A stretch of 64,000 nucleotides of DNA from Carpediemonas membranifera BICM (GCA_019828565.1 JAHDYR010000046.1:1-64000); one strand, 5' to 3'; positions 18,265 to 47,945 are shown, counted from the first letter of the stretch. Translations and numbers: made by a program. Notes: generated by a model from the letters alone, not told the origin.

Positions 18265-18269
18265 AATTT

Positions 18270-22019: not shown

Positions 22020-22025
22020 CTGCAT
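18722..22025 (-). CDS. RT + CCHC + restriction-like endonuclease (two 1-nt homopolymer indels relative to copy 2)
   Basis: PGPSG, RPVAIGEVLRR, QFG, LDMSNAY, GIHQGDPLSP, YQDD, LP..GGLG, CPIC..H..C, RHD, RMD..D..K. Confidence 0.9.
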
Positions 22026-26118: not shown

Positions 26119-26177
26119 CATGCTGTTTTTTCTGGTACTTTAACCGGGACTTAAAGTCCCGGAATAAGTCCCGGAAT
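26119..26177 (+). repeat. Left TIR
   Basis: CATGCTG...CCGGGACTTAAAGTCCCGGAATAAGTCCCGGAAT. Confidence 0.92.
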
Positions 26178-27136
26178 ACATGAAAAAAGGACGATTGCAA
26201 GAAAAAATGAACGCGCTCAAACAATTAAACTACAGCGTATTACGCCTTGCACTTGCACAAGGCATCGTTTAGACATCCGTACAACATGCTGAAGACCTTC
26301 ACTCGCGAAGTCAGTGGCATCGCACAAACTCTCGTCGAAAAACTGTCTCATGGTTCATCTAGGGTCGGGATAGACTGCCGTGCCTCCCCCACTGGTCCAG
26401 TATGCCGAGATAAAATTTCCTGGGTGCGTAAAGATGCGACTTTTGGGAATTGCTCCCAAAGAAGTTTGCTTTTGCTCGCCAACAAAGAAGGCCGAAAGCA
26501 AGTGAGAACATCTGTGTCACATAACAACCTTTGTTCTGCATCAAATAGCAGCAAGATTGCATACGGCATCGAGTATTCTCGAGAAAACACTCAAAACTTT
26601 GCCTGGCAAACGAAAAACGATCCTAAAAGCTAATTTACCTCCAATGTCTCCAAAAAGTGAGCCGCATGATGTGTATTTCTATGATCTTTGTCTTTCACCT
26701 TCAGTTCTTCTTCAAATCATCCATACGCGGCATATCAAGCATTCTCGTCGTTTGGTCAATTCTGGCAAATCAACAAAAGGTATCCATCGGCTCAGAAGAG
26801 GCTGTGGTGGTAGCCTCGGTCCCGCTTACACCCCCGTGCGTGCCTTGTGATGAAGAAAACTTGTGATATGGCCGGAATGCACTTTATGACAAACGAATGA
26901 AGCGGGCCGAGTTTATCGCCGAAATCAAGCAAATGCGCGTTAAGCTGAGTCACTTGACTGAAATTGATGACTATTACGCCATTGCCGACGACGTTACTAA
27001 GAATTACCTGACAGTTGCCTCAAATTTCTTACTGAAAGCTGTTCTTCGCTCGCAATAGACGTAATTGACTGTAGATTGGTGAAGATAGTGTAAACATAAA
27101 GAACCCTTTATATACATACTCCGATTATCCATCTAT

Positions 27137-29701
27137 CTATCTTCTCGGGCGAAGATTGTGCCCAGTCCTCCTCATCAGCTCCTCCGCTCGCTGCTCACTG
27201 TTGCACAGATTGCAGATGCAGAGAGTCTCATCCAGACCACTGTCCGCCGTCCTTACACAAATCGTCTTGGCTGTCTCGTCAACAGTGATGAGTTCCCGGA
27301 TCTCCTCCGGCTCCTCACAGATACCCTTGACCCATCCACTAAACAGCGCATTCAGCGACTGTTGGCTCGCCTCCCTATCCCAGTTGGGTACCTTAGTTAA
27401 TAGACGATTTCTCCAGGCGGCACACCGGTCGGCATCAAATAGACACGAGCAGAATGTGACAGACTTACACTGCCTTGCAATCGGCAACACCATACCATGC
27501 TTTCTCGATGAGCCACGGCGGGTGTAGTGAGCAAGGACACGACCGACCATTGTCTTCTGAGCCAGGAAGCCGAGAACCCAAGATCGATGCTTGTCCACTC
27601 GCAACTGGGCATTGATGAGGAAATCACGTTCGAAGTACTCCTCAAGCAAATAGAACATCGGAAGCCGCAGTTTCGAGTGAACCTTGGGCAGAACTGACAC
27701 CACTGCATTCAGATATAGCGAGCCGGTAAACTTGGGAGAGTAAGTCAGTCTGAGACCATCATTGAGCGTCGTAGCAACCGAGGAGCGACTCGATGGAAGG
27801 TCATAGAACAACGTCAAGACATGGAACATGATGAACGTAGAAAAGGACGCCGCGTGATGGAAAGCGATTGTCTGGTGTGTCACGTGGTCAGAGGAGTAAT
27901 ACAACGCCTGTAACTTGGCTGTAAGGAGTATGAAGGGCTGGAGTGACTGGTCAAACTCCTCAAGGTGCTCGTTGACTAGTGTCGCGAGCTTTCGTCTGTT
28001 CCAGCTCTGCTCGTTGCAGCCAGTTGTCCGCGTGAACAGCTTTTCAATCTGCTCAAGTGTGTGCACGTTCTGACCAGCGTGTTGAACCTTGACAAGGCCA
28101 AGCAGCGTCCAGAAGTCCTTCATAAGATAGTGACTCACATGCATGACAGGTGGAATGAACGTGACATCAGCGTACTTTGTGAGCACGTGAAGTGGGCCAT
28201 CTATCTCGTTGGCATAGGTCAGACAGCAGACATCTCGGTGACCATCGCGGGACCCAAACCGTGTCATGTCTTTCACGCCACCAGCGTCACGAAGACGGAT
28301 GCTATCTGCGATTGTCCAGCGATCGCAACGATTGGCAAACGGGTCGCTTGCGACCTTTCCCATGTGTAGGGAGGAGAATGGAGAGCGGTAGTATCGTCCC
28401 CGCTTGACGCCACTAACAATCTGCAACGCTTTGTGATCGCCGCAGATCCCGAGCAGGCTGATGACAACACGACTGCGTGGGAGCAACGAACTGTCACCAC
28501 ATGCGAAGGGGATACCAATGAGCTTGTTCATTAGCCGCTGTACATCATCAAAGAACGAAGGAATGAGCTTCTCTGTGCCCTGAAATGTAAGAAGCGTCAT
28601 GGGTGGGGTAATCTTCTGTGGTAGGGCTGCTCCCTCGCGATCAATTATGCGATATTTGACCGCCGTACAGTCGGCCCGATATCCATCAAACCATAGGAGC
28701 ATCTCAAGACCATAAGCCTCCTGTCGGCTCTCCGGGTTAATAGTGACGGATTGAACGAACTTGCTTGACTTGATATCGCGCTGAACTCGGTCGGGGAACT
28801 TCAGCATGAACTTAATCTGGGCGACAGGGTCATAGGACAGAGCGCTGATCACCATCCGGTGAGATTTATTTGTTCCACGCGGAATGATGCCCATGTTCCG
28901 GCATAATCTCTGAATCTCCGGCAGCTTGGATGGATCATCATGCGAAATGTATAGCCGTGACTCCCCCGATATCTTCTCGAAGTGGTGAGCGAAGAGGCAG
29001 TCGTGTTCATCGAGAGTCTCTTGCAGGTCGGTGTGGGTGGTTGGGTCATATAGGACGTAAAAAGCCTCCGCGACTTCCACGCTACGCGTGAAACCGGCTC
29101 CTGCTTGACATTGAAGCTCTTGGTTAGACACCCCATCACGCCCAGAGACATCGGGCTGCTCAGGAGTGAACGCGTTGACGTCCTCGATCAGTGTTGGGTC
29201 TGATATAACAGATCGTATGGCTGGGATGGACAGCAGGTCATACCCAAGATTCTGGAGACTGTCTACCACCGGTGGAGTGTGAATTCCAAGGCGAACTCCC
29301 ATGTCGGAGGCCATTGAAACAAATGCATGGCGGAGTCGGTCGTAGCGATTCTTCCCTAACTCGACGGCACAGATAATTGCCATGGCCGTGTATAGGCTCT
29401 TCGTCTTCGCCTCGTTGTCGACTCGCGTAACAGTCACATGAGCAGTGCTGTGATTCCTCATCAATGCGCTCCAATCAGCATTAACGACTGCACTACGTAA
29501 CGTAGCATCACTATGTGTCACCCTCAGTGGACATGACGTCAGGAAATCTCGGAGAATGCGCAAGCACTGCTCCTTGCTGTCTAAACGAAACGATTTGTCG
29601 CGGTTTCGGAGCAGAAACTCGTCTAAGACAGCGGTGATGATAGATCCAAGAGAACTGTCCGCCCCATAGGTGATGACGACTTCCCAGTTCTCGAAACGCA
29701 T
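27137..29701 (-). CDS. DDE transposase, CMC (Chapaev/EnSpm-like), 854 aa, uninterrupted
   Basis: WFDG (D1), ICGDHKA (D2), IPPVMH..LMKDF, LEEYFERDF (E); these resemble recalled Chapaev-type motifs ICGDLK / LPPLH..LMKNF / EE.GERF. Confidence 0.75.
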   Translation of the reverse strand: MRFENWEVVITYGADSSLGSIITAVLDEFLLRNRDKSFRLDSKEQCLRILRDFLTSCPLRVTHSDATLRSAVVNADWSALMRNHSTAHVTVTRVDNEAKTKSLYTAMAIICAVELGKNRYDRLRHAFVSMASDMGVRLGIHTPPVVDSLQNLGYDLLSIPAIRSVISDPTLIEDVNAFTPEQPDVSGRDGVSNQELQCQAGAGFTRSVEVAEAFYVLYDPTTHTDLQETLDEHDCLFAHHFEKISGESRLYISHDDPSKLPEIQRLCRNMGIIPRGTNKSHRMVISALSYDPVAQIKFMLKFPDRVQRDIKSSKFVQSVTINPESRQEAYGLEMLLWFDGYRADCTAVKYRIIDREGAALPQKITPPMTLLTFQGTEKLIPSFFDDVQRLMNKLIGIPFACGDSSLLPRSRVVISLLGICGDHKALQIVSGVKRGRYYRSPFSSLHMGKVASDPFANRCDRWTIADSIRLRDAGGVKDMTRFGSRDGHRDVCCLTYANEIDGPLHVLTKYADVTFIPPVMHVSHYLMKDFWTLLGLVKVQHAGQNVHTLEQIEKLFTRTTGCNEQSWNRRKLATLVNEHLEEFDQSLQPFILLTAKLQALYYSSDHVTHQTIAFHHAASFSTFIMFHVLTLFYDLPSSRSSVATTLNDGLRLTYSPKFTGSLYLNAVVSVLPKVHSKLRLPMFYLLEEYFERDFLINAQLRVDKHRSWVLGFLAQKTMVGRVLAHYTRRGSSRKHGMVLPIARQCKSVTFCSCLFDADRCAAWRNRLLTKVPNWDREASQQSLNALFSGWVKGICEEPEEIRELITVDETAKTICVRTADSGLDETLCICNLCNSEQRAEELMRRTGHNLRPRR

Positions 29702-29832
29702 TGCTTCAATAGCAATAGGACAAATTTACAAAGTAAATACACAAATGTGCTGATGTAGGGCATGGTGGCGGATCTGGCGCTGGTGGCGGACGTGGAGACA
29801 CTGGGGGTGCTCCACAACCACGTCCACTGCAA

Positions 29833-30444
29833 GGGTGACTCATGTAGAGTCGCCCGAAAAGCAGAAGCATGCGGACAACACAATAGAGGATGATTCAGAG
29901 ATCGAGACAAGTGGTAAGAGGGTGAGGACTGAGTAAATGGATTGCAAATGAGTCTTTTTAATGTCTCACCACCTGTTTGGGCCTCAGCGCTGTCGTTCAG
30001 GCCAATCCACGTTTGTGGATCCGTGCATTTTATGGCTTATCGACCGGACATCTCCTGAACTGAGCGCCAGGGGGCGGAGGTGGCGTTGGCGTGGGGCGTG
30101 GAGGCGCTGGGGGCGGGGGTGGCGTTGATATTGGGCAATTACATAAAGTGCACGGTGCTTGGAATTTCATTCCAACCTCAAAATGGCGGGAAAGCATTAT
30201 TGGAAGGAACTAGTGGCAGCTATGCGGTTCTTTATACTGCAAAAGCAACCAGCTGTCGTCAAAAGCGCGCCATCTACCATCAATAACCAACATCTGCGTT
30301 GCACTCCACTGTTCTCGGTCGTTAATGCACAAAATCACTAAACAACATCAAAAGGACTGTTCATACGTTATTAAACATTGCTTGCTACTTCTGTTTCATC
30401 TTATTGTCGTTTACAGCTGTGTTGTCCTCAACAAATGCCAAGAC
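29833..30444 (+). repeat. Inter-cargo spacer R1 (includes a copy of the 3' end of the 37516 gene)
   Basis: Near-identical to the reverse complements of R2-R4. Confidence 0.92.
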
Positions 30445-30534
30445 GGAGGCAACGCTGTCCGGGCCATCTGTGTCCATGACACTCACGCCTGTTCTCATTT
30501 CACAGATGAAAGACAGCCGAACACATCAAACCAT

Positions 30535-31160
30535 TTACTTCCTCCCCTTCCTTGTCTTCGGCACACTCTCTTCACCAGTGCCATCTGACAGAAGCTCCGC
30601 CACGAGATACACCGTGGCATGATTACCCGTAATGACAATGACCTTCTCGTGGCCCGTCTCCCTGATGGCATCACTGAGTTGAGTCAGACTTCTGAAATCC
30701 TGAGGGTAGACCCTTCCGTTGTCGTAAACAGTCGCTGAGTTGACTATGCGACCATCTTCCTCTTCTCTGCGCTGCAGGACCATGACCTTCTCCTTCTCGA
30801 GATGCGTCCAAGCCGAGATAGCAGTGCCTGTCAGCCAGCCCTGGCCGTTGAACAGCTCGGAAGGGTCCCACCATGTGCCCCTGACCTGGCCCTCGGCCTT
30901 TTTGGCCATGGATTCCTCGGCGTGTTCTCTCAGATGATTTTTTTGAAATGTTTGATTCGATTCTTACCCAGTACTTGGCCGTGCTTAATGTCGTTGAGCG
31001 AATGAGCGATGCAGGCTCCGTCACGGTGAATCTCCTTGGCAGGGCAGGTCAGGATCCTGTCGATCGCGGTTTGTACGTCGAAGACCAGCTCAGGCTCATG
31101 CTCGTTGTCACTGATCGACACGACTGACATATTGTCGTCATCTTCCGGCCCACGCACCAC
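30535..31160 (-). CDS. Second OTU-like cysteine protease domain (frameshift at a T-run near 30940)
   Basis: HRDGACIAHSL ... ITGNHATVY. Confidence 0.6.
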
Positions 31161-31295
31161 CGTGTCAGGCTCCTCCTCGTCTGCCTACTTACCCTTCTTC
31201 TCCTCTGTCTCCACCTCCTTGTCCTCCTTCTTCTCCGTCTCAGCCTTCTCCTAAACGTACACAGTCGAACGCACTACAAAGGCATATCCAAATCT

Positions 31296-32945
31296 TTATT
31301 CAATCTCAACGACCTCGCACTTCTTCTGGTACAGCGTGGCGTGAGCCGGATCGCCTTCGATGACAATAGCGAAATTATCTGTCAACCCCCACAAGTCTGC
31401 ATCGGGTGCAAGCATGGTGGTGCCATCAAACAGGTATAAGATGGCGGAGATGCCTTGCATGCCGTTGTATCCGTCGTATGACTGGACAACAAGGATGTTC
31501 CGCTTCTGCTTCCTTGCCCAGACTCGGATGGCGTTCGAGTTATAGTAGCCGGAGTCCGGATCTGTCAGGCTACGCTCCGTGACATTCTTCTTAGACCAGT
31601 ACTTGGCCTTCACTGACTGGCAGAGGCCACGCTGCCACTTTTCGAAGTCGCCATCAACTCGGCCACCCAACTCAATGGCTTGGAGACAATATGCAACGCA
31701 GTTGCCGTCACTCTTGACATGAATCGCGGTACAGTTAGTCGTGAGAGCCTCCACGTTGATGCACGTCTGCACCGCGGCCTCAGAGGTGATGCGAGTCTGA
31801 GTCTCCGGCTCAGTCTGGATGCAGGCGTCGCATGTGTTCACCGTCTCCTCTTCTGCCTCACCCCTCTTCTCCTTCGCCTCCTCCTGCTCCTCCTCTGTCT
31901 CCTCCTCTGAGTCCTCAGGCCTGGCCTTCTCGGGCGTGATGAAGAGGGCCTTGCGCTTCACAGACATGGAGGCCTCGGGCTCGTTCGTAGCGCGTCGGGG
32001 GCAGGAAGTCCTGGAGAGCGTGCCAGACTGTGGCGGCATGGGGCTGGCGGCGAACGAAACATCGCAGGAAGCAAGGTACCCAACGTCATGCTCATGATGG
32101 ATACGCCTGCACTCAAGAAAATGGTCTCTTCTCTCGTCAGTCACCTGCTTCTTCAGCCGCTCGACCTGCTCCTTGAGAGATTGGATCTCCGTCTTCTGAG
32201 CAGAGATCAGACTGGCTGTCACGCGACGTACGACTCGAGCTTCAGCAGGGAGTCTCGTGGTCAACGTCTTCTCGCCAGTAAGCGCCTGAGTATCGATCTG
32301 GTCGGCCCAGAGATAGCGCTGAAGCACGTGGTCGGCGTGATCCTCGCCGGGACAGGGGGCGTTATCCCTGCGGGCCCGCACACGACGAGTACCGCAGATC
32401 TCATCGTACACTCGCTCCCATACCACGTCATACTTGGACTCGCGCGTGTATTCCATCTCCTTTTCCAACTCCTTTCGGTCTTCCTCATCGGCCAGCTTCA
32501 TCATCTGAACCCGAGTACAATCCCTGATGTCCTCGTCCTCCTCCTTCGCGAGTTCACACTCAAGCCTAGCGTTTGTCTTCATTCTAGCCTCACGAATGCT
32601 CTTCTTCACCCGAATACGCGCGCTCTCCACCTCGCCGTCGTACAGGTGCGTGAAGGTATCCCCGCCGAGGACCTGCTTCAGTGTTTTCTTGTGTTCCCCT
32701 GTGACCCTTTCACCCTCATTCAATTTCATCGTCGCCATAAACTGCGCCTTAAGGTCCTTCTTCATATCTTCCGTCTCCTGGCGCGTGAGGCGGAAGAACG
32801 TGGCAATACGCTTGAGATTAACACCTGTGTAAACAATTTCGCTCAGTAACGTACGTTCCTTGATCACAGTAGCGAGTAAATCGCGCCTAGGCAGCAAAAA
32901 GCGCGCGAAGGACGTCGCATTTGCCTTTAGCGCTTGCAGCTGCAT
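31296..32945 (-). CDS. Coiled-coil protein with C-terminal OTU-like deubiquitinase domain
   Basis: KSDGNCVAYCL ... GDPAHATLY; homolog at 62883-63935. Confidence 0.72.
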   Translation of the reverse strand: MQLQALKANATSFARFLLPRRDLLATVIKERTLLSEIVYTGVNLKRIATFFRLTRQETEDMKKDLKAQFMATMKLNEGERVTGEHKKTLKQVLGGDTFTHLYDGEVESARIRVKKSIREARMKTNARLECELAKEEDEDIRDCTRVQMMKLADEEDRKELEKEMEYTRESKYDVVWERVYDEICGTRRVRARRDNAPCPGEDHADHVLQRYLWADQIDTQALTGEKTLTTRLPAEARVVRRVTASLISAQKTEIQSLKEQVERLKKQVTDERRDHFLECRRIHHEHDVGYLASCDVSFAASPMPPQSGTLSRTSCPRRATNEPEASMSVKRKALFITPEKARPEDSEEETEEEQEEAKEKRGEAEEETVNTCDACIQTEPETQTRITSEAAVQTCINVEALTTNCTAIHVKSDGNCVAYCLQAIELGGRVDGDFEKWQRGLCQSVKAKYWSKKNVTERSLTDPDSGYYNSNAIRVWARKQKRNILVVQSYDGYNGMQGISAILYLFDGTTMLAPDADLWGLTDNFAIVIEGDPAHATLYQKKCEVVEIE

Positions 32946-34240: not shown

Positions 34241-34262
34241 GAGGGAAGGAAGCCCGCAGGAG

Positions 34263-35471: not shown

Positions 35472-35635
35472 CATTGTAAAGAGGAAGAGTTTATGATTGG
35501 AGCATAGCTGATGTCCATAAACACCATTCATAAGCCAGTCCTGGCTTGTTTTCCACTGCTACTTCTCTCGTTGCGACGCACAGCTAGCTGTCGCGAAATG
35601 CACTTTAAGACCGAATTTCACACAGCTACCTGTGC

Positions 35636-36941
35636 ATGGTGTTCGAGCTAGATAGCGACAAGCTGGAGCGACTTACTTCCTTACCTGGTAATAGTAGACA
35701 ATATCTGCACGACTTTGAACCTGAAAAGCTGCAGGTCGTGATCAAAGTTGATGAGCATTATGGTATGGAGGTTCCCACCCTGCTAGCGCTCAAGGACAGT
35801 CCGCATGTCCTCCCTGTCGTCGATACAGGTTTTGTCGACCGTGATCCAGCCTTCATGGCTCCTTTGGTCAACTGTACCCCCTTCGCTGGCATCTGCAAGG
35901 CTCACTCCAGCGTGCAGTTCCGCTATGTTTCGCATCTGCTGCAGGCAGTATGCTACATGCATGACCACGGGGTTGTCCATTGCGATATTAAGCCAGACAA
36001 CTTCCTCTTCAGCAAGAGTCAGAAGGGATACCTCATTGATTTTTGGGTCTGCAATGAGGAAGCCGGCTAATGGCGACGACAGGTGGGCCATACAACTGAG
36101 ATTCGCATCCGAGTATCGCGGCACCCATGGATATTTGCCCCCAGAGCTTTTCTACGAGTACCTTGTCTCGCGCTCAGTGATTCCTGCTGCACGCGACACC
36201 TCCAAGCTCGCGCGCATGACGGCAGGGGCTCTTTCCGTCACTTCTTATGTCGTGACACCTGCATCGGACATTTACTCTTGCGGTATTGTCATTATGATGC
36301 TCGTTAACGGTCTCTCTAAGTCCCCCTTTGCCGCGAAGGTGACTGACATGGGTGCAAACATGGCGCAGATCGACAACAAGAAGAAGAAGAAGATGCTGAA
36401 GCTTGGTAGCTTGCTGAACTGGTGCCAATTCTATGGTGGGCAGTTGCAGTTGTCACCTCAGGCACAGACACATTTCAAAGATTGCCTCGAGTGTGTCAAC
36501 GTGAACTCTGAGCTCCCGATTCGCGGCACCACGCCACCTACTTGTCTCAGCCTGTACGACCTGGCAATGCAGATGCTCCACTTCGACCCTGCGAAGCGTC
36601 CCACTGCTGCCGAATGTCTTGACAAGCTCAAGGTCATCATGCGCGTGCATGAATGCGTCGCCAAGCCGAGTCCGCTTCTGTTAGATGATACAGAAGAGGT
36701 CACCCTGTCTGCAGCTCAGCGAAAGAGACTGACCGACTGCTGTCAGCGAGGGTTTGAGGGTCAAGTCTTCTATCGGCGCTGCATAGTGTGTGGTAGAGAC
36801 CTTCATGGACGCGAGAACGTCAGCTGTGACACATGCCACAAGGGATACAGGCAGGTGAGCACCAATAAGTGCGCAAAAGGTGTGCGCGGAAGACTGCACA
36901 GGCAGTTTATTGCAATGATTGAGCGGACGAAAAGAGATTGA
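35636..36941 (+). CDS. Ser/Thr protein kinase with C-terminal Cys module (1-nt frameshift at DFG)
   Basis: VVIK, HCDIKPDNFL, IDF/G, GTHGYLPPE, DIYSCG, DPAKRPTA; CIVC..CDTC. Confidence 0.9.
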
Positions 36942-37055
36942 TACTTTCTGTGATGCAGGAATGAGATCAATGCTGCTGACAGGTCTCGAGATGGCAGAGG
37001 TGCTGGAGAAGAGAGAGCAGAAACAGAATCAGAAGTAAATGTCCTAAGGAGATGT

Positions 37056-37617
37056 AACAGAAGTAGCAAGCAATGTTTAATAACGTATGAACAGTCCTTT
37101 TGATGTTGTTTAGTGATTTTTGTGCATTAACGACCGAGAACAGTGGAGTGCAACGCAGATGTTGGTTATTGATGGTAGATGGCGCGCTTTTGACGACAGC
37201 TGGTTGCTTTTGCAGTATAAAGAACCGCATAGCTGCCACTAGTTCCTTCCAATAATGCTTTCCCGCCATTTTGAGGTTGGAATGAAATTCCAAGCACCGT
37301 GCACTTTATGTAATTGCCCAATATCAACGCCACCCCCGCCCCCAGCGCCTCCACGCCCCACGCCAACGCCACCTCCGCCCCCTGGCGCTCAGTTCAGGAG
37401 ATGTCCGGTCGATAAGCCATAAACTGCACGGATCCACAAACGTGGATTGGCCTGAACGACAGCGCTGAGGCCCAAACAGGTGGTGAGACATTAAAAAGAC
37501 TCATTTGCAATCCATTTACTCAGTCCTCACCCTCTTACCACTTGTCTCGATCTCTGAATCATCCTCTATTGTGTTGTCCGCATGCTTCTGCTTTTCGGGC
37601 GACTCATGGGTCACCGC
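37056..37617 (-). repeat. Inter-cargo spacer R2
   Basis: Reverse complement of R1. Confidence 0.92.
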
Positions 37618-40600
37618 CGCGGTTTGTCCGAGACCAAATGCCATTCTTGCAAACGCCATAAGGTCTGGCGGGAATGTACTGCTTGTCGTCAGAGCATTGT
37701 AGATCTCAGGACGGATATCTTTCGCCGTTGAGTAAACCATGCACAGATGACTGTGAACAATGAGGGTGCTCAAGCCCCTGACTGTATCGTTATCCTTCGG
37801 GATCATTCGGTTCTTCAGCAAGGAAGTGAAGTCGGCGAAGTGGATGATGATGACACCAATGATGTTGTGGAACTTTGACATCATGCTTTCTGTCTCACCC
37901 ATCAGTTTCAGACGCTCCACAACGTTGTTGTAGAAGGGGGTCTTCGTTATGTTAAGGCGTGTGGAAAGTGCACCTTGCTTGTTCGCCTGGACAAAGATCC
38001 TCTGCTGCTGAAGAGCCACTGAGAGCAGGGCGTCGCTGGGGGCCACGTTTTCGTTATACTTAATCTTCTGGCTTGACAAACAGTCGTAGAGACAAAGCTG
38101 GTAAGCAATCCAGGCCCGAATAACTCGGACGTTGTTCTCCTGGAATGAGTGTTCCAGCTCGTGAAGGGTCGACTCACTGGCGTTGAAACCATCCATCCCA
38201 GAGATATCGATGGTAATGGCAGAGTTTTTCGGCACGCTGCGAATCCACGTTTCAAGGCTTGTCTCTCATACTGTTAAAAACGGGGTTTCGATGCCTGAGG
38301 AAATCATGAGGAAGTCCGTTTTCACGAAAAAAAATGGTGAAAGCATTAGATTCAGTAAAATCTTTTCACCATTTTCACAAGGCGCAAGAACACGAAAGAG
38401 ATGGCACTGAACACCCCTGGATGTACAGGACATCACTATACACGCTTTCCATGCATCTGTGAGCTTCTGCATTTTTGAGACTACTGTTCGCCAAGAGAAT
38501 CACTGAGGTTGTCGATAAATGCTATCCATAAGCTACTCCTGTCTTTATTTCCGCTGCTGCTTCCCTCGTAGCGACGCACAGGTAGCTGTCGCAAAATGCA
38601 CTTTAAGACCGTATTTCGCACAGCTACCTGTGCATGGTGTTTGAGCTTGATTGAAAGGCACTGAACAATACAGGGCTACTCTGCAGGTAACAGTAAGCAA
38701 TACTTGAGCGACTTTGGGCCTCGAAAGTGGTAGGATCTCATCAATGTTTATGACCCACCCTCGCATCATCCTGATCAGAACTTCACGCTTACTCACATGC
38801 TCAAGTACTATCCATATGTCCTCCCTGTCACCGATGTAGTCGTTGTCGACCGTGTCTCAGCCTGGATACTCCTCCTGTCGACCGCACTGTCGTCTCCAAC
38901 GTCTGTTAGGTCGACCCTAGTGTCCAACTCAGTTATATTAGTCATCTAATGCAGGCTAAATTCGTCATACATGACCACGGAGTTGTTCAATGCGACTTCA
39001 AGTCTCACAATTTTCTTTTCCGCTCTGAACAGAATGTATAGGTGACTGAATATGGCTCAGCGATGGCTAGAATCACAACTAATTGTCCTCTCTGACTCTT
39101 TAAAAGCTATTCGAGTGTGTCAGATCATTCTAATCTTTCCAGTCGCGCCATAATGTTAAACAGAAAGCCCAATCTCGCGATTGAATACGCATAGTCGACG
39201 CAGAGAAGCATTGTATAGCCAAGAACGCCTTCTTGAACATGACAGTATTGTTGACGTGACTCCAACATTAGTCCTCGGATTGATATTATGTCGAGACAGG
39301 AAGATGGGAGGGATGCACCACGACTCATGAGACTAAATGTCTCCCAAACCATCTCCTAAACCATTTGATGTAGTGTGATTGAACTTGTACTGTGTTTACC
39401 TTGAAGTGCGCCCCATGTATTTTTTTTGTTTACGTATATCAACATAAATACGCCAATTCATTATCGTAAAATTGCTGGGCCCGGGTCAGCACAGTCTAAG
39501 GACCCACCATACCGCTTTTCAGGCAGAAGTAGTCTGAACTCTAATTTTGCTTTACGTATATCTCAGTAAATAGACTCGAACGATATGTAAACACCTCGCA
39601 GCAGCCATAAAGACCCAATAGCTACCCCTTGGCCGATTTTCAGCTCATTCTGCACCTGCGCTGTTTTGGCCGTTTTTCGATGGGCATCTCATCGCTCCAT
39701 TTTCGATTTTGTCAATTTGGTCCTCAGAGGACACAGATTAAATTTTTCAGTGTCCTCTGAGGACAACATTGACAGGATTGTAGCTTATCCAGAACTTGGA
39801 GGTGGCCAGAAACTGAAATCGCTGAAAAGCTCAGAGACGTCGTTATATCATCTATAACGGCATCTCTGAGCTTTTGGGCGCACGGTTTCATCATGACGTG
39901 GAGATCGATGCTTGTGAAAATGAAGAATCGACTAGGAGAGCTCTACGCTTGCATGCAGCCTTCTATTAGGTTGTTGATGTTGGTTATATGCTTCTTTTTC
40001 GTTCTCGATGTATCTGGATGGAAGTTCTTTCACAAACTGCATTTGGCTGAATTGATGTTGGTTATTGATGATAAAGGCACCAGAATGGCTCATATGCATG
40101 CTATAAACCCGTTCTGTGCCGTTGGAATAGCGTTATTCGATAGTCGGTAGCACTTGTTGTTCGTTTCACTCGTTGCAATCATTAAAGTGCACAACGAGAA
40201 CTGATAAATCCTGGCCCATCTGTGCATGTGACAGCAACAAGGGGTCTCGGGGTAAGAGCAGGAACAAGAATTGGGAACAGCGAATTCCAGGCTGCCTGTC
40301 AACGAGCTAAGAACTGACCCCAGCCAGGTGAAACAAATGGAACTTCTCAGAATGTCATAATATTCGCTGCTGTATGAGACTCACTGCCTCCCCTGCTCAC
40401 CCAATTAGCGATATAGGGATTTAGGGATGTGCAGTGCAAGGACCGTGATAAATGCGGACGCAGAAGAGGCAGACCTAGCACTTGTGGGGAACACTCACAC
40501 CCCCGCTAAATCACACGCAAGGTCACCGGAGAAGACACAAGCCTCATAAAGTCCACAGGTATGAACTTTTGAGGTCATAACTCTATGCTCTATGGCGGGT

Positions 40601-42424
40601 GCAATTGTGATAGGAAGTGCGTTGAATGCAAGTTAGAGGTCTAATGCGCTCTAGAGTCCTTCTGGTCATCATTCAGCGGATGAGGTAGCGCCCAGGCCGG
40701 GTGGAGAGTGGCGAAAATGGTCATTCACGAGCTTTGGCAGTTACCCGCGTCTCTCGGCTGTGGGATAATGGGATACCGGACCTGTCCATGACCGAACACC
40801 AATCGACCTAAAATTGTATTTAATGCGAAAAATTTTTTACGATGGTGTCTCTGACCTCCTGCCATGATACAGGTGCGAGAGGTACAAAGTTACTTTTTTT
40901 GATGTTTTTCTCCCGAGACCATTTTGTGCCACCAAGAAAAAAAAAGTGGCACAAATGAGTTTGAAGTTTGTGTGCTGCAGAACTACATTCTGAGGTGTTC
41001 AGGGGATGTGTATAGTGTCTAATAAAGTACCCAGTGCAAACCACCAGCGGCATGATCATCACAATAGCGATTACGAACTGTGAAATTTCACATTTTCACA
41101 TTTCACGGAATTTTCACGAAACGCGATTACTGCGATTGCGACATCTTGGAGCTGAAAAGCGGCAGAAATGCCTGTAACAAGGATCTATAACATATCTTGA
41201 AGTTAGACTGCTGATAGCTAGTCTCGTTGTCGAGTTCTGAGCTTGCACAAAAAAGTTGAATCTGAATTTCACGGTCAATATTGACCTAGATCGCGAAAGT
41301 GAAGGTGTAAGAAAAGGCTAACTCACCAACGAGAGCAGCTAGAGGAAAATGGTAAAGGGTTTTGCAATCTGCATCCCCGGAGGAGTTCAGTTTCACACAG
41401 ATGAGGATTTGAGAAAGCTCCCCTTTCACAACGTCTTTGGGCACCTTCGACGGCGTCGATAATGATGAAGCATACCATTAGCCCTTATAGGCTATGATAC
41501 ACATCTACTGTTGACGAAATGTTCTGCAATGTTGTCATCGACGAGATATGGTACCACATTTTTTATATCTCAAGATTGATGAAGTGCCCCATCTAGCCGA
41601 GCATATCCGGGTGCTGTATGAAGGTCATATAGCACCCCAGTATGGTTGGTTAGTTGGGGCACTTCACCAATCCCGAGATCGAGTGATTCAATCAAAAGAA
41701 CCCAGCGACTGAGACATCGCTGAGAGCTGAAACCGAGAGAGGATGTATAAACAGTAGTACTGAGCTTGCTTACAGACCAGCTTGTCATTACGACCACTTT
41801 TCACCAACTACATAAAATGCGTTTCCCTATTTACTCGCCGATGAGCAAAGTAATGCTCGACAAAGATGTAAGATATGCGTTATTCATCTATAAAGCACCT
41901 GCTGTAGTATTTAAATCGGCTTCAGGGGTTCTAGTTTCGGATATCGCCATTTTCACTTCCTCACGACTTCCTCAGGCATCGAAACCCCGTTTTTAACAGT
42001 ATGCTTCCTGGCGGCTGAGGTTCTTGAGTGGTACGATGACCTGCTGTTGTGTCGGGGCAGGCGTACCAGCGCGTCGCGGCGCCAGCTGTCTCAGCTTCTT
42101 TGTCTGCACCTTCTTCTTCGCAGACTTGGTGGTCTTGGGCTGAAGCTTGGATGCAGGCTTGGCGGTTTCTCCTACCGCGACAGGCACATCTTCAATGGGC
42201 TCTTGGGGAATCTCCGCCAGGAGATCTAGCTCTTTCATGATAGACGGGCTGTCGGCGAAGAGATCGCGCAAGAAACGGTCGAATGCTCTGTCAAACTCAC
42301 CAGAAATGACCGCGGCGATCTTTCGGGCCTGTCTGTTGTTTCTTTCTGATGGGAAAGGGCCACAAGTAAGCTCAATAGCAGCAATAAGCTGCTGCAAATG
42401 CAGTTCTGACTCCAGAGTGTCCAT
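37516..42424 (-). CDS. 389-aa orphan protein split by the nested transposon
   Basis: Removing 38267-42003 and one CT joins ..KNLSRQE|ETSLETWIRSVPKNSAIT.. in frame (421+749 nt). Confidence 0.8.
38267..42003. mobile_element. Nested non-autonomous CMC-like element (3,737 bp)
   Basis: ~49-bp TIR CATACTGTTAAAAACGGGGTTTCGATGCCTGAGGAA..; 2-bp TSD CT. Confidence 0.92.
38520..39060 (+). pseudogene. Decayed copy of the cargo kinase and its upstream region
   Basis: 38549-38650 resembles 35551-35652; HDHGVVQCDFKSHNFLF remnant near 38970-39020. Confidence 0.75.
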
Positions 42425-42560
42425 TGCTGCATAAGCTGCACATGAATCCAGCCTGGTCGATTCGTTCACGCGGCAGACAAGAAGAGAGACGTGCCAGGCA
42501 TGGCACTCTCTCTGGCAATGGCAAGTCTTCAACGGGAAGCCGCGAACGCCTCGTTGATCT

Positions 42561-43073
42561 GTCTTGGCATTTGTTGAGGACAACACAGCTGTAAACGACA
42601 ATAAGATGAAACAGAAGTAGCAAGCAATGTTTAATAACGTATGAACAGTCCTTTTGATGTTGTTTAGTGATTTTTGTGCATTAACGACCGAGAACAGTGG
42701 AGTGCAACGCAGATGTTGGTTATTGATGGTAGATGGCGCGCTTTTGACGACAGCTGGTTGCTTTTGCAGTATAAAGAACCGCATAGCTGCCACTAGTTCC
42801 TTCCAATAATGCTTTCCCGCCATTTTGAGGTTGGAATGAAATTCCAAGCACCGTGCACTTTATGTAATTGCCCAATATCAACGCCACCCCCGCCCCCAGC
42901 GCCTCCACGCCCCACGCCAACGCCACCTCCGCCCCCCTGGCGCTCAGTTCAGGAGATGTCCGGTCGATAAGCCATAAACTGCACGGATCCACAAACGTGG
43001 ATTGGCCTGAACGACAGCGCTGAGGCCCAAACAGGTGGTGAGACATTAAAAAGACTCATTTGCAATCCATTTA
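42561..43073 (-). repeat. Inter-cargo spacer R3
   Basis: Direct repeat of R2. Confidence 0.92.
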
Positions 43074-43092
43074 ACCACATCACTCTCTCTGA

Positions 43093-43695
43093 TCATTCAT
43101 ATTTGAAGGTTAGGGCATTAACAACCATGTGATCCTTCGCGCTGGAGTTAAGACGATAAATGATGTAGTAGGTAAACTCTTCTTCATCGATCTTCTCGTC
43201 AACAAGCGCCTTATACCAAACCATGAACTCATTGGGAACGGTGACCATCACGAAGACAATCTTGCGTTCAATATCAGAGACACGGAAGGGGAAGTGCTGA
43301 GTCGCAAATTCAGCTAGCGTCCTGCCGCTACAGGAAAGGGCGATCTTGCCCCAATGCAGGAACTCCAAGTGACGCTGCATGACGCTTGATGCTCGCTCAA
43401 TGCTCGATACATGCTCGACACCACGAGAGGAAGATGATATTGTTCTCGTGATGCTGTCCGTACCCGAGCACCGCACAACTCCGTCTCCATAGCTCTCCTG
43501 CAGAGCAGCCGTTTTCTCGTTGTAAATCGTCGCCGCGTTCTCTGTAGTTAGCCAGAACATCACAAATCGTTCCACACAGGAATCCTCGATCATGTTGATG
43601 CATTGACTTGCGGTCTCTATCTTACCACGCTTTATAGTGGTGTATAGAGCCGCAAGATGCTCAAATGCGATCCACTGTTGGCTGTCTGTCGTCAT
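43093..43695 (-). CDS. Orphan 200-aa protein, divergent from the SET gene
   Basis: Clean ATG ORF between R3 and R4; no recognised motif. Confidence 0.55.
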   Translation of the reverse strand: MTTDSQQWIAFEHLAALYTTIKRGKIETASQCINMIEDSCVERFVMFWLTTENAATIYNEKTAALQESYGDGVVRCSGTDSITRTISSSSRGVEHVSSIERASSVMQRHLEFLHWGKIALSCSGRTLAEFATQHFPFRVSDIERKIVFVMVTVPNEFMVWYKALVDEKIDEEEFTYYIIYRLNSSAKDHMVVNALTFKYE

Positions 43696-43749
43696 CGTTC
43701 AAATCCGATGTGCAGGTTATGGAACAGGGAGCGAGTTTCGCAATTGTGA

Positions 43750-44478
43750 GTGACAACAGGAATGCACACTATCATGATCCCGCATGTTGCTACAGATGGA
43801 TCAGAGGAAGAGGAGAACATTACAATGTCTTTAGATGATTACGAGAAATTGATGTCTCTGAAAAAGCTCTCTAAGGAGGATAGAGAGCAGTTCCTCGGTG
43901 CAGGTGGCAAGAAGGCGGACTCTGAGCATGCAGGCGAAGAACTACTTGAGAACGGCATCGCTAAGACCGCAGATGGGATCCTTCTTGAGCCACAGAAGTC
44001 CCTCATGGGCACCGATGTTGGCCAAGGGGTCATCTCGTCGCACCGAATCGACGTCGGTTCTCTGGTCGGTGTCTATGCTGGTGAGGTCATCCATGAGCGC
44101 CAGTCAAATGGTAACTACGACTACCTCATCGATGGAACCCAGTTTTGCGTCAGCGCCAACCCTGAAACAATCGGTGTCCATCGCATCAACGACAACCCGG
44201 TCGTGACCAATGTGCAGTGCCACATTGGTCACGTTCTTGTTCGTGTTGCTGCTGATGAGACGAAACTGCTCCCGCTTCTCTTCTTCGTGTGCGTTCGAAC
44301 AATTCACCCCTACGAATATTTATCACTCGAGTACGACCATCACTACTGGGCCCAAGGAGAGTGGGAGCGACTTCCGCTGTTCGTTGTGTCGTTCAAGCGC
44401 CTTGCCCAGAACGCATCCCTCCATGGTATATCTTCTGCCCGAGAGACGGCGCGTCAGTACCTGCGCCTGGCTGAATAG
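43750..44478 (+). CDS. SET-domain lysine methyltransferase-like protein
   Basis: GQGVIS..I..G..VGVYAGEVI, HRIND (cf. RFINH), EYLSLEY..YW. Confidence 0.82.
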   Translation: MTTGMHTIMIPHVATDGSEEEENITMSLDDYEKLMSLKKLSKEDREQFLGAGGKKADSEHAGEELLENGIAKTADGILLEPQKSLMGTDVGQGVISSHRIDVGSLVGVYAGEVIHERQSNGNYDYLIDGTQFCVSANPETIGVHRINDNPVVTNVQCHIGHVLVRVAADETKLLPLLFFVCVRTIHPYEYLSLEYDHHYWAQGEWERLPLFVVSFKRLAQNASLHGISSARETARQYLRLAE

Positions 44479-44511
44479 GTAAACGGACGTCTATAGTATC
44501 TATCTTTTGTT

Positions 44512-44892
44512 CCTTTCTGATGTTGTTTAGTGATTTTTGTGCATTAACGACCGAGAACAGTGGAGTGTAACGCAGATGTTGGTTATTGATGGTAGATGGC
44601 GCGCTTTTGACGACAGCTGGTTGCTTTTGCAGTATAAAGAACCGCATAGCTGCCACTAGTTCCTTCCAATAATGCTTTCCCGCCATTTTGAGGTTGGAAT
44701 GAAATTCCAAGCACCGTGCACTTTATGTAATTGCCCAATATCAACGCCACCCCCGCCCCCCAGCGCCTCCACGCCCCACGCCAACGCCACCTCCGCCCCC
44801 TGGCGCTCAGTTCAGGAGATGTCCGGTCGATAAGCCATAAACTGCACGGATCCACAAACGTGGATTGGCCTGAACGACAGCGCTGAGGCCCA
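44512..44892 (-). repeat. Inter-cargo spacer R4 (core ~380 bp)
   Basis: Direct repeat of R2/R3. Confidence 0.92.
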
Positions 44893-44971
44893 GACATGCA
44901 CATATACATTCATTTATTCCTGTCTCGCTCTCTTGCCTGTCTGATCGCGACGTTTGACCCACTCAAATGCC

Positions 44972-45928
44972 TCATCTGTGAGGGTAGACAGAGACGTCGC
45001 GAGTATTCCCAGTCCTAACCTTCCGAATCAACGTTCGGCAAGGATCTTTGGGTGTCGTCGTTGAGGTACGACGGCAAGCCCACTCTGAGGTCTCGCATGA
45101 GCCCCCGCACACGATGCAACGTCCTGACAGGACAAGCGGGGGGTCATGCGTTCTGGCCATAGCTAGCTGGTCCACCTGGCTAGCAGTCAGTGTGCGGGAC
45201 ATGAGCGTACCGCGCGTCTTGCCCGTGTCTTCGGGCCTGGGCCTCGGCTCATCCAGGTCTCCGACGTCCGAAGTCGTCATCGTTGCCTGCTCCAAAGTGG
45301 TGGGCACCGGCTGAGACCTGACACCTGGCAGCCTGAGCATGGTCTTACGGCCGCCGCTACGCAGCCTCTCAATCTCATCCTCAAGAATGCTGACCTTCTT
45401 CGTCAGAGCATGATGTTCACTTGTCGCAACGAGCGACACTGGCGACTTAAGCAGCGCGATGAACGCCCTGACGTTATCGTGCAATGGAACCGAGAAGGCC
45501 TGGGCCAAGCTCTCGACCAGCTCCAGGACCTTGGGCAGGGTGTCGGGCTCAAGCTCATTGTGAGCTGCGCGGTTCCGGTACTCAACGAGATCACGAATGA
45601 TCTTGGCATGGGCTTTGTTGTACGCCGCTCGATTGGACATCTCACGAAGGATTCTTGATGAATCCACGTCCTGTTCGAGCTCTTTGCCGAGGAGGTCCTT
45701 CTCGGTGCTATTGGGCTTGCACCCGGGGTTAAATGCAGGCGAGGCCAAGATCTTCCGCATCCAAGGGACCATCATGGCGAGCAGCTGAAGAACTCGCGCA
45801 TTATCGCCAAGGATGCGGAGCTGCTCATCGTTCCATGGTGAAATGAACAGGTGATGATCTTGTCGAGCGGATGATTGCCCTTTGAGAGGTGCTTGGCGAT
45901 GCTTAGCGCGATATCGGTCCATCCACAA
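44972..45928 (-). CDS. HEPN-like (Swt1-type) protein with coiled coil and C-terminal Cys module
   Basis: Helical region with YRNRAAH (RxxxxH); RCIVCG. Confidence 0.6.
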   Translation of the reverse strand: MWMDRYRAKHRQAPLKGQSSARQDHHLFISPWNDEQLRILGDNARVLQLLAMMVPWMRKILASPAFNPGCKPNSTEKDLLGKELEQDVDSSRILREMSNRAAYNKAHAKIIRDLVEYRNRAAHNELEPDTLPKVLELVESLAQAFSVPLHDNVRAFIALLKSPVSLVATSEHHALTKKVSILEDEIERLRSGGRKTMLRLPGVRSQPVPTTLEQATMTTSDVGDLDEPRPRPEDTGKTRGTLMSRTLTASQVDQLAMARTHDPPLVLSGRCIVCGGSCETSEWACRRTSTTTPKDPCRTLIRKVRTGNTRDVSVYPHR

Positions 45929-46242
45929 CTGTGGATGACGAGCAATTTAAGGTAGGTGCCGCATCAGTCAATAACCCCGTGCTATCGTGCAATAGAACAC
46001 AGTTAACACTGCTTTCCATGCGCAGCAACACAGCCTGTGGCGGAGAGACGCCCGGTATGGACGACACCAGGTGATCCACAAACGTGGATTGGCCAATTAC
46101 GTCGGCCCCTCCCATCCCGCATCCCTCAGGATACGCAAGCACAAGCTCTCTCCCTGCAGCACCTCTCTGGCGCTCTCTAAAATCGTCGTATAGCGTAAAC
46201 AGAATGTGCCGCATCAGTCATTCGTTCATTTTATTCCACTTA

Positions 46243-47431
46243 TCACTCTTGGTCATCCTCCTCATCACTCACCTCCTCGCGGATACTGACATCATCACGA
46301 GCCTCGTCATCCGCGAGTGTCAATGGCTCTGTAATAGCGCGGGCAGCGTTGGTATACTCACCGTTGAACTGTCGCTGGCCTCTCTGAATGCGAGGAAAGC
46401 AATTCACGCACACCGGAACACGACGAGAAGGACGCTTCAACATGTCAGTTCCAGTGTCAAAAACGGTGTCCGCGATATGATCCGGACAGAACCAGTTGGA
46501 ACAAAAGTAGCAGAGCATGCTGGGTCCATCCTTAATACTTCTACCACAGTCCGCTGCTTGGGTGGTCTCGGTTGGAGGTGTACGATGAAAGCACTCGTCG
46601 TTACCATTGATTGCCTTACAGTCATCGCAGATGGATATCTTCTGCTTATCGGCCCTGTTAGATGCCGGGTATGCCATTCGCTCCTCCAAGTAGCCACTGA
46701 CACAGCTATAATGGAAGTACCTCTCGCATTGTTGGCACTGCAGGGAGTTGTCGTCCTCAATCTTCAGCAGCAGATTCATCGGATCGTGACAGACCCCCAC
46801 AACACATGCGCAATGAGTTTCGTAGCTGCTGATAAGTGAAGTTGTCGAGTGCGTGGCGCCGGTTCATTCCTGTCTGGATAAGTGCCGTTGCCTGCGCCAC
46901 ACATGTGGAAAATTGGGAAGCGACTTGGTCGATGTGCGCTGCTTCCCGCTGTCTGTGTTCACTGGCCAGATTGTCACGAACAGTTACGACCGACTGAGGG
47001 GCGGGTTGAGACTGTTTCCGAGCCCTCTTGTCCTTCTTCTTCGAATAGGTCTGGAAGGGGATGCTGATGTAGCGCGAAACCGGAGGCTGCCATACCACAG
47101 TGCTAGTGGTACCTGATGCTGCCTGCAGGTTGTCCTGCAGCCTTGATAGGTTGATCTCGCCGAAGTCCTTGAGGAACACACCTTTGACCTTACCCTCGGT
47201 GTTGATCTGGTAAGACGAGGGGGCGAGTCCATCCAGAGCGTGGATAAGGGCATGACGAAGAGAACAAGCCATCGCTTGCTTCTTCTTGTAGAGAGCTCGG
47301 ATATCATCTGGCAGAATAGCCCAGCACACCTCTGAAACCGCAACAGGCATGGCTTGAGCACAATCGCGTTGAAAGTAGAATACTTCTTTTGCAATTGCAA
47401 TCAGGATTTCTCGTTTTTGGGTCTTTTCCAT
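46243..47431 (-). CDS. Tandem PHD-like zinc finger protein (frameshift near 46795)
   Basis: C(G)VC..CQQC..FHYSC..CDDC, then C..LCYFC..WFC..H..CVNC. Confidence 0.75.
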
Positions 47432-47885
47432 GATGCCTGTATGTGCACTTTAAGGTTGAAGATTGCTCACACAATTTGACTTTTTCTTTATCGAATGGGA
47501 TAAAGTTGAAGTAAATAAAGTACTATTCCGTTGCTAGGACAGCAAGGGGATGTTACAGTAGGAGTTTCAACACTTTTTGAGAGGATACCCCTCAGAGGTG
47601 ACAGTGCAACACCCGAAATTTTGTCTATACACGTCATATACAAGGTCTAATGCATCTTTGCCAACCACTTTTAGCGTTTGTATGTGTCAGACGATCGAGT
47701 TCTGAAGAGCGACTTTGGCCAAGTCATGCGACCTTATCCTGCACTGACGATACGAAAACCGATCATAAATATTTATTGAGACATCTGCATGCAGTATTAA
47801 TGTTTCCAGAGGTAGAACTAGGCTAGTAGAAGACTGTCACCCACTTTGGGGATGATCCGACGACATCGATCAAAATCAATCAAGG

Positions 47886-47945
47886 ATTCCGGGACTTGAT
47901 TCTGGGACTTTAAGTCCCGGTTAGAGTACCGGAAAACGCAGCATG
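47886..47945 (-). repeat. Right TIR
   Basis: Reverse complement of 26119-26177. Confidence 0.92.

Follow-up and report, generated by a model that had tools for sequence, protein, structure and literature searches.

The stretch of DNA analyzed here (the window, 64,000 nucleotides) is contig JAHDYR010000046.1 (positions 1-64000) of the Carpediemonas membranifera assembly GCA_019828565.1, and all coordinates given are those of the window, which equal those of the contig. This is DNA of a free-living metamonad and not human DNA. It holds a 21.8-kb DNA transposon that encodes an 854-amino-acid (aa) transposase with a predicted fold like that of RAG1 and Transib, together with about ten further open reading frames (ORFs) of 120 aa or more, the cargo, some of which resemble OTU, SET, PHD, and protein kinase domains (Table 1). 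Four internal repeat cassettes and a nested relative also lie inside the element, and a third member of the same family begins further downstream.

Table 1. Features of the transposon and of its relatives in the window
Feature	Position	Strand	Description
Whole element	26119-47945		21,827 bp; bounded by inverted repeats and an exact empty site
Left terminal inverted repeat	26119-26165	+	heptamer CATGCTG, 18-nt spacer, then CCGGGACTT / AAGTCCCGG repeats
Right terminal inverted repeat	47899-47945	-	ends in ...CAGCATG
Target-site duplication CA	left 26117-26118, right 47946-47947		single CA at empty site 18751-18752
Transposase	27137-29701	-	854 aa, uninterrupted ORF; RAG1/Transib-like predicted fold
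Cassette A (inverted)	29834-30447	-	directly upstream of the transposase start
ORF, 124 aa	30535-30909	-	no Pfam match
OTU-like protein, 549 aa	31296-32945	-	acidic coiled N-terminal part; C-terminal OTU-like cysteine protease at 31299-31814
ORF, 402 aa	34263-35471	+	38%-identical paralog in L002; no Pfam or PDB match
Protein kinase gene, two frames	35636-36941	+	C-terminal zinc-ribbon-like tail
Cassette B	37050-37605	+	internal repeat
Split cargo gene, 3' part	37516-38266	-	interrupted by the nested element
Nested non-autonomous relative	38267-42003		3,737 bp; 49-nt terminal inverted repeats starting CATACTG; duplication CT at 38265-38266 and 42004-42005
Split cargo gene, 5' part	42004-42859	-	ORF runs up into cassette C
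Cassette C	42552-43095	+	internal repeat
ORF, 200 aa	43093-43695	-	33%-identical paralog in L002
SET-like methyltransferase, 242 aa	43750-44478	+	profile match
Cassette D	44467-44958	+	internal repeat
HEPN-like candidate, 318 aa	44972-45928	-	motif RNRAAH; 91% identical to L002 7758-8852
PHD-like zinc-finger ORF	46243-46863	-	C4HC3 signature and a second Cys-rich module
ORF, 224 aa	46757-47431	-	overlaps the start of the PHD-like ORF in another frame
Third family member (start)	60809-64000	+	runs off the window; begins CATACTG; GACTTWAAGTC palindromes
OTU-like paralog in third member	62886-63998	-	

The ends of the element were fixed by comparison with an unoccupied copy of its insertion site. 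Both flanks were 100% identical to a second copy, 7.4 kb upstream, of a repeat that encodes a reverse transcriptase (RT), with 25750-26049 matching 18384-18683 and 47945-48244 matching 18750-19049, and the offsets of the left and right flanks differed by 21,829 bp, the length of the element plus 2 bp. In a three-way alignment, the empty site read ...CAGCAG-CA-GCCGCG and the occupied site ...CA/CATGCTG...CAGCATG/CA... (slashes mark the element ends). Owing to this alignment, the boundaries and the 2-bp duplication rest on direct sequence evidence and not on chance similarity. Reading the duplication as 3 bp (GCA) is formally possible and would break the symmetry of the termini. The arms of the terminal inverted repeats (TIRs) were 47 nt long and 89% complementary in a repeat search and extended to about 60 nt by eye with one indel. 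These results agree with the initial annotation of this DNA, made from the sequence by a model, which had described a giant DNA transposon with TIRs of about 60 bp and a 2-bp target-site duplication. It had also placed the empty site in a neighboring copy of a CRE element; the empty site was found there, exact to the base, whereas the name CRE was not confirmed, as the repeat matched only Pfam RVT_1.

The interior of the element had a GC content of 0.45-0.55, compared with 0.58-0.62 in its flanks. The palindrome GACTTWAAGTC occurred four times in the window against 0.03 occurrences expected, always at a distance of 30-75 nt from an end of the main or the third element; the main element carries one in its left TIR (26148-26158) and one in its right (47906-47916). 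The terminal heptamer by itself was not enriched in the window (24 matches, 17.5 expected).

The transposase gene proved to be the uninterrupted 854-aa frame with DDE-like motifs that the initial annotation had described, and its product is identical to a protein of contig JAHDYR010000046.1. A family alignment revealed invariant or nearly invariant motifs (W337-x-D339-G, G-D422-H-K-A, P-P-x-M-H521-x-S-H524, R-T-T-G-C562-N-E564-Q, and L-L-E687-E688-x-F-E691-R-D-F), with H/C751-x-C753 and C828-x-C830 conserved at the C terminus. The protein had no Pfam match (E up to 10) and no PDB sequence match, either as a single sequence or as a 15-sequence profile, and a search of the viral structure library BFVD returned nothing. 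Likewise, none of the 15 family members matched the Pfam models for CACTA-type, Plavaka, KDZ, and RAG1 proteins at E up to 1. An AlphaFold (AF2) model (pLDDT 74, pTM 0.70) displayed the RNase H-like order b1-b2-b3-a1-b4, with the invariant D339 on b1, the invariant D422 directly after b4, and a long helical region beyond. The top 46 Foldseek matches of this model in the PDB were all RAG1, RAG-like, or Transib proteins. The first 43 were RAG1 (E, 5e-9 to 4e-6; probability, 1.0; 700-800 columns), with target-normalized TM scores mostly of 0.42-0.52, and they were followed by amphioxus RAG-like (BbRAGL, 8e-6) and Helicoverpa Transib (HzTransib, 5e-4); the next two, an unrelated DNA polymerase (7b0h; E, 5.5e-3; probability, 0.16) and the P element (8e-3), were not significant. 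Both the topology and these matches place an RNase H-like DDE fold in this ORF. To our knowledge, no structure of a CMC (CACTA/Mirage/Chapaev), Mirage, or Chapaev transposase has been solved, and the RAG1 match therefore speaks for kinship with the whole group rather than with Transib specifically.

Among the cargo, which the initial annotation had put at about nine ORFs, only the kinase exceeded a Pfam threshold (the split gene, the two-frame kinase, and the pair formed by the 224-aa and PHD-like ORFs were searched as separate pieces). Its two pieces matched Pkinase at 3e-11 and 1.5e-6, the first with 43.5 bits against a cutoff of 31.7. In the OTU-like protein, the DGxC motif and a His (D36, G37, C39, and H158) were invariant in five homologs. 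The Pfam OTU model did not match this domain, and its profile gave weak matches to nairovirus OTU (0.014) and A20 (0.035); the 50 best PDB matches of its AF2 model (pLDDT 63, five-sequence alignment) were all OTU deubiquitinases (best, 3.6e-4; TM, 0.56-0.59). The SET profile (A8, built from this ORF and three homologs in other elements) matched the SET domain of EHMT2/G9a at 8.6e-8 over 139 positions, and all of its 35 matches were SET enzymes. The first SET motif (GxG...YxG) and the conserved Tyr of ...YDxxYW were present, but all four members have ND in place of NH, so that methyltransferase activity is uncertain. The PHD signature, C-x2-C...C-x2-C-x4-H-x2-C...C-x2-C, had its eight Cys/His positions invariant in five homologs, with the first pair spaced C-x4-C in the window copy; a second Cys-rich module was likewise invariant in the five, and two of the homologs matched Pfam PHD (0.014) and PHD_4 (0.025) below the cutoffs. 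The identities that the initial annotation had given to these three domains were thus sustained by a predicted fold with invariant catalytic Cys and His, by a profile match, and by an invariant C4HC3 signature, respectively. The 402-aa ORF faintly resembled a tyrosine-recombinase core, and this candidate was dropped when a PDB profile search found nothing.

The 224-aa and PHD-like ORFs may form one gene. The same two-ORF layout occurs in the element at L003, one of the other loci compared below, and the upstream ORFs of the two elements are weakly similar (E, 3e-4). The overlap between the PHD-like ORF and the ORF upstream of it measures 100-180 nt in these two divergent elements (46757-46863 in the window; 15606-15786 in L003), and the PHD protein is one long ORF in L004 and L009. 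An intron or a programmed frameshift may account for the overlap.

An all-against-all ORF comparison covering seven loci (the window element, L002-L006, and L009) and the partial third element showed which cargo genes accompany the transposase. OTU-like genes were found in five of the seven (window, L002, L004, L005, and L009) as well as in the third element, PHD-like genes also in five (window, L003, L004, L005, and L009), and SET-like genes in three (window, L004, and L006, the last with two copies); GNAT acetyltransferases were present in L006 and L009 and a kinase in L005. At least two organisms and a metagenome thus have OTU, PHD, and SET genes beside transposases that share only 25-30% identity. 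Because the transposases are so divergent and the hosts differ, we regard these cargo genes as long-standing companions of the transposase and not as recent captures from the host. The initial annotation had named as speaking against its proposal a cargo of host genes present once per genome, in conserved synteny and outside TIRs. This was not what was seen, the cargo families recurring instead beside divergent transposases. Within C. membranifera, the cargo modules are mosaic as judged from the sequences: in L002, an OTU gene 98% identical and an HEPN-like gene 91% identical to those of the window lie beside a broken transposase that is only 57% identical.

Further copies establish that the element has been mobile and recently active in C. 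membranifera. The 90%-identity cluster of the transposase has five further members on five other contigs, one of which is a second full-length 854-aa gene, and close relatives of the protein are annotated as hypothetical proteins of C. membranifera. Two of these loci, L010 and L011, are 99.7% identical to the window along 4.3-4.9 kb, and both alignments stop at the terminal base equal to window position 26119 (CAGCATG) and give way to unrelated flanks. In L010 (13585-14951), a second terminus of the "right-end" type lies in the same orientation about 1.4 kb past the end of the copy, which suggests that one family member inserted into another there, as in the window.

In the window, the nested insertion can be undone on the sequence: deleting 38267-42003 plus one CT in silico produced a single 534-codon ORF from the two pieces of the split gene, both of which are matched by an intact 431-aa homolog in L002. 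Long ORFs are missing from the nested element, but it retains a kinase remnant that is 69% identical over 519 nt to 35512-36013, and it is therefore a decayed, non-autonomous derivative of a kinase-carrying relative. All five characterized insertions of the family lie within other repeats, namely, an RT element, an A-rich repeat, a gypsy pol gene, a family member, and an RT ORF at 60.8 kb. This distribution fits guided insertion, and it also fits a simple tolerance of insertions at such sites.

The four cassettes are repeats of 380-560 bp with a core of about 380 bp that shows no differences among them, whereas the TIRs of the same element are only 89% alike. They are located between gene ends, and in cassette A the 3' end of the coding sequence of the split gene is repeated. 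Their edges are mosaic, with different pairs of copies having different edge segments in common, and L002 and L003 have kept a 74-nt stretch of the cassette. Moreover, the breakpoints of the rearrangements among L010, L011, and the window (29974, 30450, and 44511) fall at cassette edges. An Rfam search of the window found one tRNA only, and the cassette matched no RNA family. On the best reading of these sequences, the cassettes would be homogenized by gene conversion and drive the reshuffling of the cargo. The cassette is probably a shared regulatory sequence that also serves as a recombination substrate; a promoter or terminator and a gene-conversion tract are possibilities for its nature.

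A HMMER search of 1.84 billion representative proteins yielded only 17 relatives of the transposase, from several C. membranifera subfamilies, from a eukaryote assembly (GCA_002919055.1, PPCM01), and from metagenome contigs. A profile search of a 5.8-billion-protein database, limited by its word index, returned only the query and P0002. Two of the related loci hold complete elements. The one in L003 spans 8.6 kb, has perfect 22-nt repeats starting CATGCTG, and encodes a transposase 32% identical to that of the window; its flanks overlap by exactly 2 bp (TC) on two uninterrupted repeat copies in the window, which provides a second proof by empty site. The element in L004, from another organism, spans 11.6 kb, has 74-nt repeats starting CATACTG and a GC duplication, encodes a transposase 28% identical, and lies in a Ty3/gypsy pol gene. 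Ends of the form CATRCTG...CAGYATG are thus present in four complete elements (main, nested, L003, and L004), and the partial element at 60809 has the same 5' end; between subfamilies, only the heptamer CATRCTG is common. The same four elements have 2-bp duplications (CA, CT, TC, and GC), two of them proven on empty sites. No terminal repeats were found in L005, L006, and L009, probably because their contigs are truncated.

The surroundings of the element are rich in other repeats, and the whole contig appears as a nest of transposable elements. The retroelement that hosts the main element has a continuous ORF of 1,134 codons up to the insertion (18722-22025 compared with 47821-51222), and in the "empty" copy, two 1-bp indels (offsets 29195, 29196, and 29197) have left three separate ORFs. 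A tRNA-Arg(ACG) gene (18190-18265) abuts the RT-encoding repeat, and a 242-bp direct repeat with 100% identity (18253-18494 and 22020-22261) brackets this repeat copy and overlaps the 3' end of the tRNA, suggesting a tRNA-linked or tandem insertion of the retroelement. A repeat of about 3.5 kb is present in inverted copies 98-100% identical with a strong A/T strand skew (12099-15561 and 55764-59230), and the L003 element sits in a third copy of this repeat family. On the minus strand, 2250-5793 encodes Ty3/gypsy-like pol ORFs that are 35-50% identical to the pol genes adjoining the L002, L003, and L004 elements.

We consider it likely that the region is an autonomous, recently active, RAG1-like cut-and-paste transposon that belongs to the CACTA/Mirage/Chapaev/Transib (CMCT) clade or adjoins it and that carries conserved accessory genes. 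Members of this clade have the motifs C(2)C and H(3-4)H together with duplications of 2-5 bp, and their termini are mostly CA...TG; one of its groups, ESTA, has been tied to RAG1 solely via HHpred (PMC12730594). The family described here shares the RNase H-like DDE core, 5'-CA...TG-3' termini, a 2-bp duplication, and a fold-level relationship to RAG1/Transib. Judged by its termini, duplication length, and modeled fold, it would therefore belong to the CMCT clade or lie beside it as a new sequence-level lineage, atypical in its motifs and, relative to Transib, in its duplication length. The label "CMC-like" used in the initial annotation is reasonable in this broad sense of termini, duplication, and fold, but short of demonstrated membership, as no sequence link was found in Pfam or PDB and C(2)C is absent.

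Transib proper was excluded on several grounds. Transib has 5-bp duplications and a heptamer in which positions 1-3 (CAC) are invariant (PMC1131882), whereas every element examined here had a 2-bp duplication, the heptamer reads CATGCTG or CATACTG with T at position 3 instead of the Transib form resembling CACAATG, and no similarity to the Transib/RAG1 core was detected, with no Pfam or PDB RAG1 match at E up to 10 for single sequences or profile. ESTA was set aside because it duplicates TA, and the duplications here are CA, CT, TC, and GC. Mirage likewise has 2-bp duplications, and in this feature the family resembles it.

Several observations weigh against our interpretation. For the transposase, no sequence-level link to any known transposase family was found in Pfam or PDB with a single sequence or a profile, and the model was built on a shallow alignment of 15 sequences. 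The C(2)C motif of the CMCT clade is absent, as the interval from D422 to H521 contains no conserved Cys pair (6 of the 15 sequences have one Cys, at position 440), and H521-x2-H524, conserved at 100% and 79%, replaces H(3-4)H. The third catalytic acid could be E564 or E687/E688. In RAG1 numbering, D708 and E962 are 254 residues apart; by analogy, this spacing favors E687/E688, which would follow D422 by 265-266 residues, and the H-x2-H...C-x-E arrangement, with the invariant C562 two residues before E564, favors E564.

The cargo adds further points on the same side. The kinase changes frame by one base at a run of five Ts (36040-36044) inside the DFG motif, and either a mutation or an assembly error in the homopolymer may be the cause; the kinase domain named in the initial annotation is thus real, but no single frame is intact in this copy. 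The nested insertion has broken another cargo gene. The initial annotation had mentioned neither this frameshift nor the nested element nor the fourfold cassette. Since the kinase is frameshifted and this gene is interrupted, an intact toolkit appears unnecessary for the persistence of the copy. The HEPN-like ORF has the RxxxxH motif that the initial annotation reported, but it matched three HEPN Pfam families only at E values of 0.013-0.08, all below the cutoffs, and it had no PDB sequence match. Five ORFs, those of 124, 402, 200, and 224 aa plus the split gene of 534 codons, could be assigned no function, and the ratios of nonsynonymous to synonymous substitution rates (dN/dS) among recent copies, 0.5-1.6 from few differences, were uninformative.

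As for the mechanism, the RAG1-like DDE transposase would most likely bind the subterminal GACTTWAAGTC-type repeats and cut at the conserved CATRCTG heptamers. By analogy with RAG1 and Transib, cleavage may proceed through hairpins of the flanking DNA formed at the heptamer border, and integration would follow with a 2-bp stagger. From their domain content, the accessory proteins are predicted to target lysines of histones, to serve as readers of histone tails, and to strip off ubiquitin-like marks, and the accessory genes probably act on host chromatin or ubiquitin signaling to the benefit of the element. We infer from this, as the initial annotation did, an anti-silencing or chromatin role of the cargo: the proteins could blunt host silencing, as has been proposed for transposon-borne TET/JBP (PMC12730594), or guide insertion.

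In the RAG system, by comparison, the PHD finger of RAG2 reads a histone mark and guides or activates RAG1. RAG2 is reported to stimulate Transib transposition in vitro (PMC4840297). It is accordingly possible, if rather unlikely, that the accessory proteins are cofactors of transposition or targeting and not anti-silencing tools, with, for example, the PHD protein guiding or activating the transposase and the OTU protein stabilizing or processing element proteins. The RAG1-like fold of the transposase, the presence of a PHD-like gene beside it in five of seven loci, and the location of all five characterized insertions inside repeats, which is compatible with chromatin-guided targeting, are in line with such a role. 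However, the PHD-like ORF of the window is short, no beta-propeller is fused to the PHD gene or regularly linked with it, and insertions in repeats may only mark tolerated sites on a repeat-dense contig. A RAG2-like partner composed of a beta-propeller and a PHD finger was considered and dropped, since the RCC1-like gene beside the PHD gene of L005 comes from a family with more than 35 copies and occurs without the transposase in L012. These RCC1-like beta-propeller genes (L005 782-2371; L012 10001-11152) have more than 35 paralogs with 35-69% identity in GCA_002919055.1 and are probably part of another repeat or of an expanded gene family.

The novelty of the family could also be only apparent, for want of Pfam and PDB models, in which case the element would be an ordinary member of a named superfamily with 2-bp duplications such as Mirage within CMC. 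With no CMC-type structure known to be solved, any CMC member would find its closest PDB entry in RAG1, and a 2-bp duplication with CA...TG termini is within the CMCT range (PMC12730594). We nevertheless find this unlikely, because only 17 relatives were found among 1.84 billion proteins, confined to C. membranifera, one other assembly, or metagenomes, and because none of the 15 members matched the Pfam CACTA-type, Plavaka, KDZ, or RAG1 models and C(2)C is absent. A more far-reaching proposal, that the family is a sister of Transib/RAG1 at superfamily rank whose transposase depends on its own PHD, SET, and OTU proteins to choose or prepare chromatin targets, is in our view quite doubtful. If true, it would represent an independent protist counterpart of the RAG1-RAG2(PHD) partnership, and the coupling of RAG1-type transposases to histone-mark reading would predate the RAG lineage of animals and extend beyond it.

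We think it highly improbable that the cargo arose by chance capture of pieces of host genes (Pack-type) and is without function for the element. The frameshifted kinase, the interrupted gene, the variation of cargo order between copies, and the near-neutral dN/dS among recent copies would be expected of such passengers, but OTU, PHD, and SET recur with 25-30%-identical transposases in at least two organisms and a metagenome, their catalytic or zinc-binding residues are invariant, and the ORFs are full length and not fragments. An assembly artifact, or a segmental duplication mimicking insertion, is conceivable on a repeat-dense contig of only 70 kb and has almost no chance of being correct in view of three copies on three contigs with exact common termini and unrelated flanks, of four independent 2-bp duplications, and of empty sites exact to the base.

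Taken as a RAG1-like cut-and-paste transposon with conserved accessory genes, the element would extend RAG1/Transib-type transposases into Metamonada, with a different stagger (2 bp), and bear on how RAG, Transib, and CMC diversified and on which features (heptamer ends, zinc motifs, and duplication length) are ancestral. Few eukaryotic DDE transposons are known to carry a conserved multigene set, and this one looks aimed at histone marks and ubiquitin, so that conflict or cooperation between a transposon and host chromatin becomes open to study in a free-living protist. The genome of C. membranifera is reportedly missing several canonical complexes for DNA replication and chromosome segregation. 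The 99.7%-identical copies, the two full-length 854-aa genes, and the polymorphic sites suggest that the element may still move and could therefore become a genetic tool for metamonads.

Among known systems, Transib, RAG1, and ProtoRAG are the closest, as they account for the best structural matches and for nearly all of the significant ones (700-800 alignment columns), and they have in common with this family an RNase H-like DDE core with a long insertion after it and termini composed of a heptamer starting with CA, a spacer, and a subterminal motif. The family differs from Transib and RAG1 in its 2-bp duplication, the CAT start of its heptamer, the lack of detectable sequence similarity, and the lack of a C(2)C zinc motif; in addition, Transib elements are 3-4 kb long with one gene, whereas those described here are 8.6-21.8 kb long with up to about 12 genes. 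With the CMCT groups (EnSpm/CACTA, Mirage, Chapaev, Plavaka, ESTA, and Lanisha), the family shares CA...TG termini and a duplication within the range of 2-5 bp; ESTA likewise has RAG1 as its structural or HHpred anchor, and some CMCT members carry epigenetic enzymes (TET/JBP) as cargo (PMC12730594). On the other hand, the absence of C(2)C, the H-x2-H motif, the non-TA duplication (compared with ESTA), the lack of Pfam CACTA or Plavaka matches, the cargo of several genes (SET, PHD, OTU, kinase, and GNAT), and the metamonad host distinguish it from these groups.

Transposon-borne effectors and large cargo also have precedents elsewhere. Plant VANDAL elements are DNA transposons with an anti-silencing effector. 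The TET/JBP transposons of fungi (KDZ, Plavaka, and others) resemble the present family in carrying a chromatin or epigenetic effector thought to protect against silencing (PMC12730594). In both cases, a single effector acts on DNA methylation, whereas several domains of histone and ubiquitin type are predicted here from sequence. Helentron/Helitron2 and other elements encode OTU or Ulp1 cysteine proteases, so that an element-encoded OTU-like protease is a point of likeness, but these are rolling-circle elements with the protease fused to Rep/helicase, and the OTU-like gene here is a separate gene in a DDE/TIR element. Starships, Teratorn, and Mavericks are likewise large and carry multiple passenger genes, and they rely on tyrosine recombinases, on piggyBac combined with a herpesvirus, and on an integrase with polymerase B, respectively; the C. 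membranifera element is smaller and would be moved by a RAG1-like DDE enzyme.

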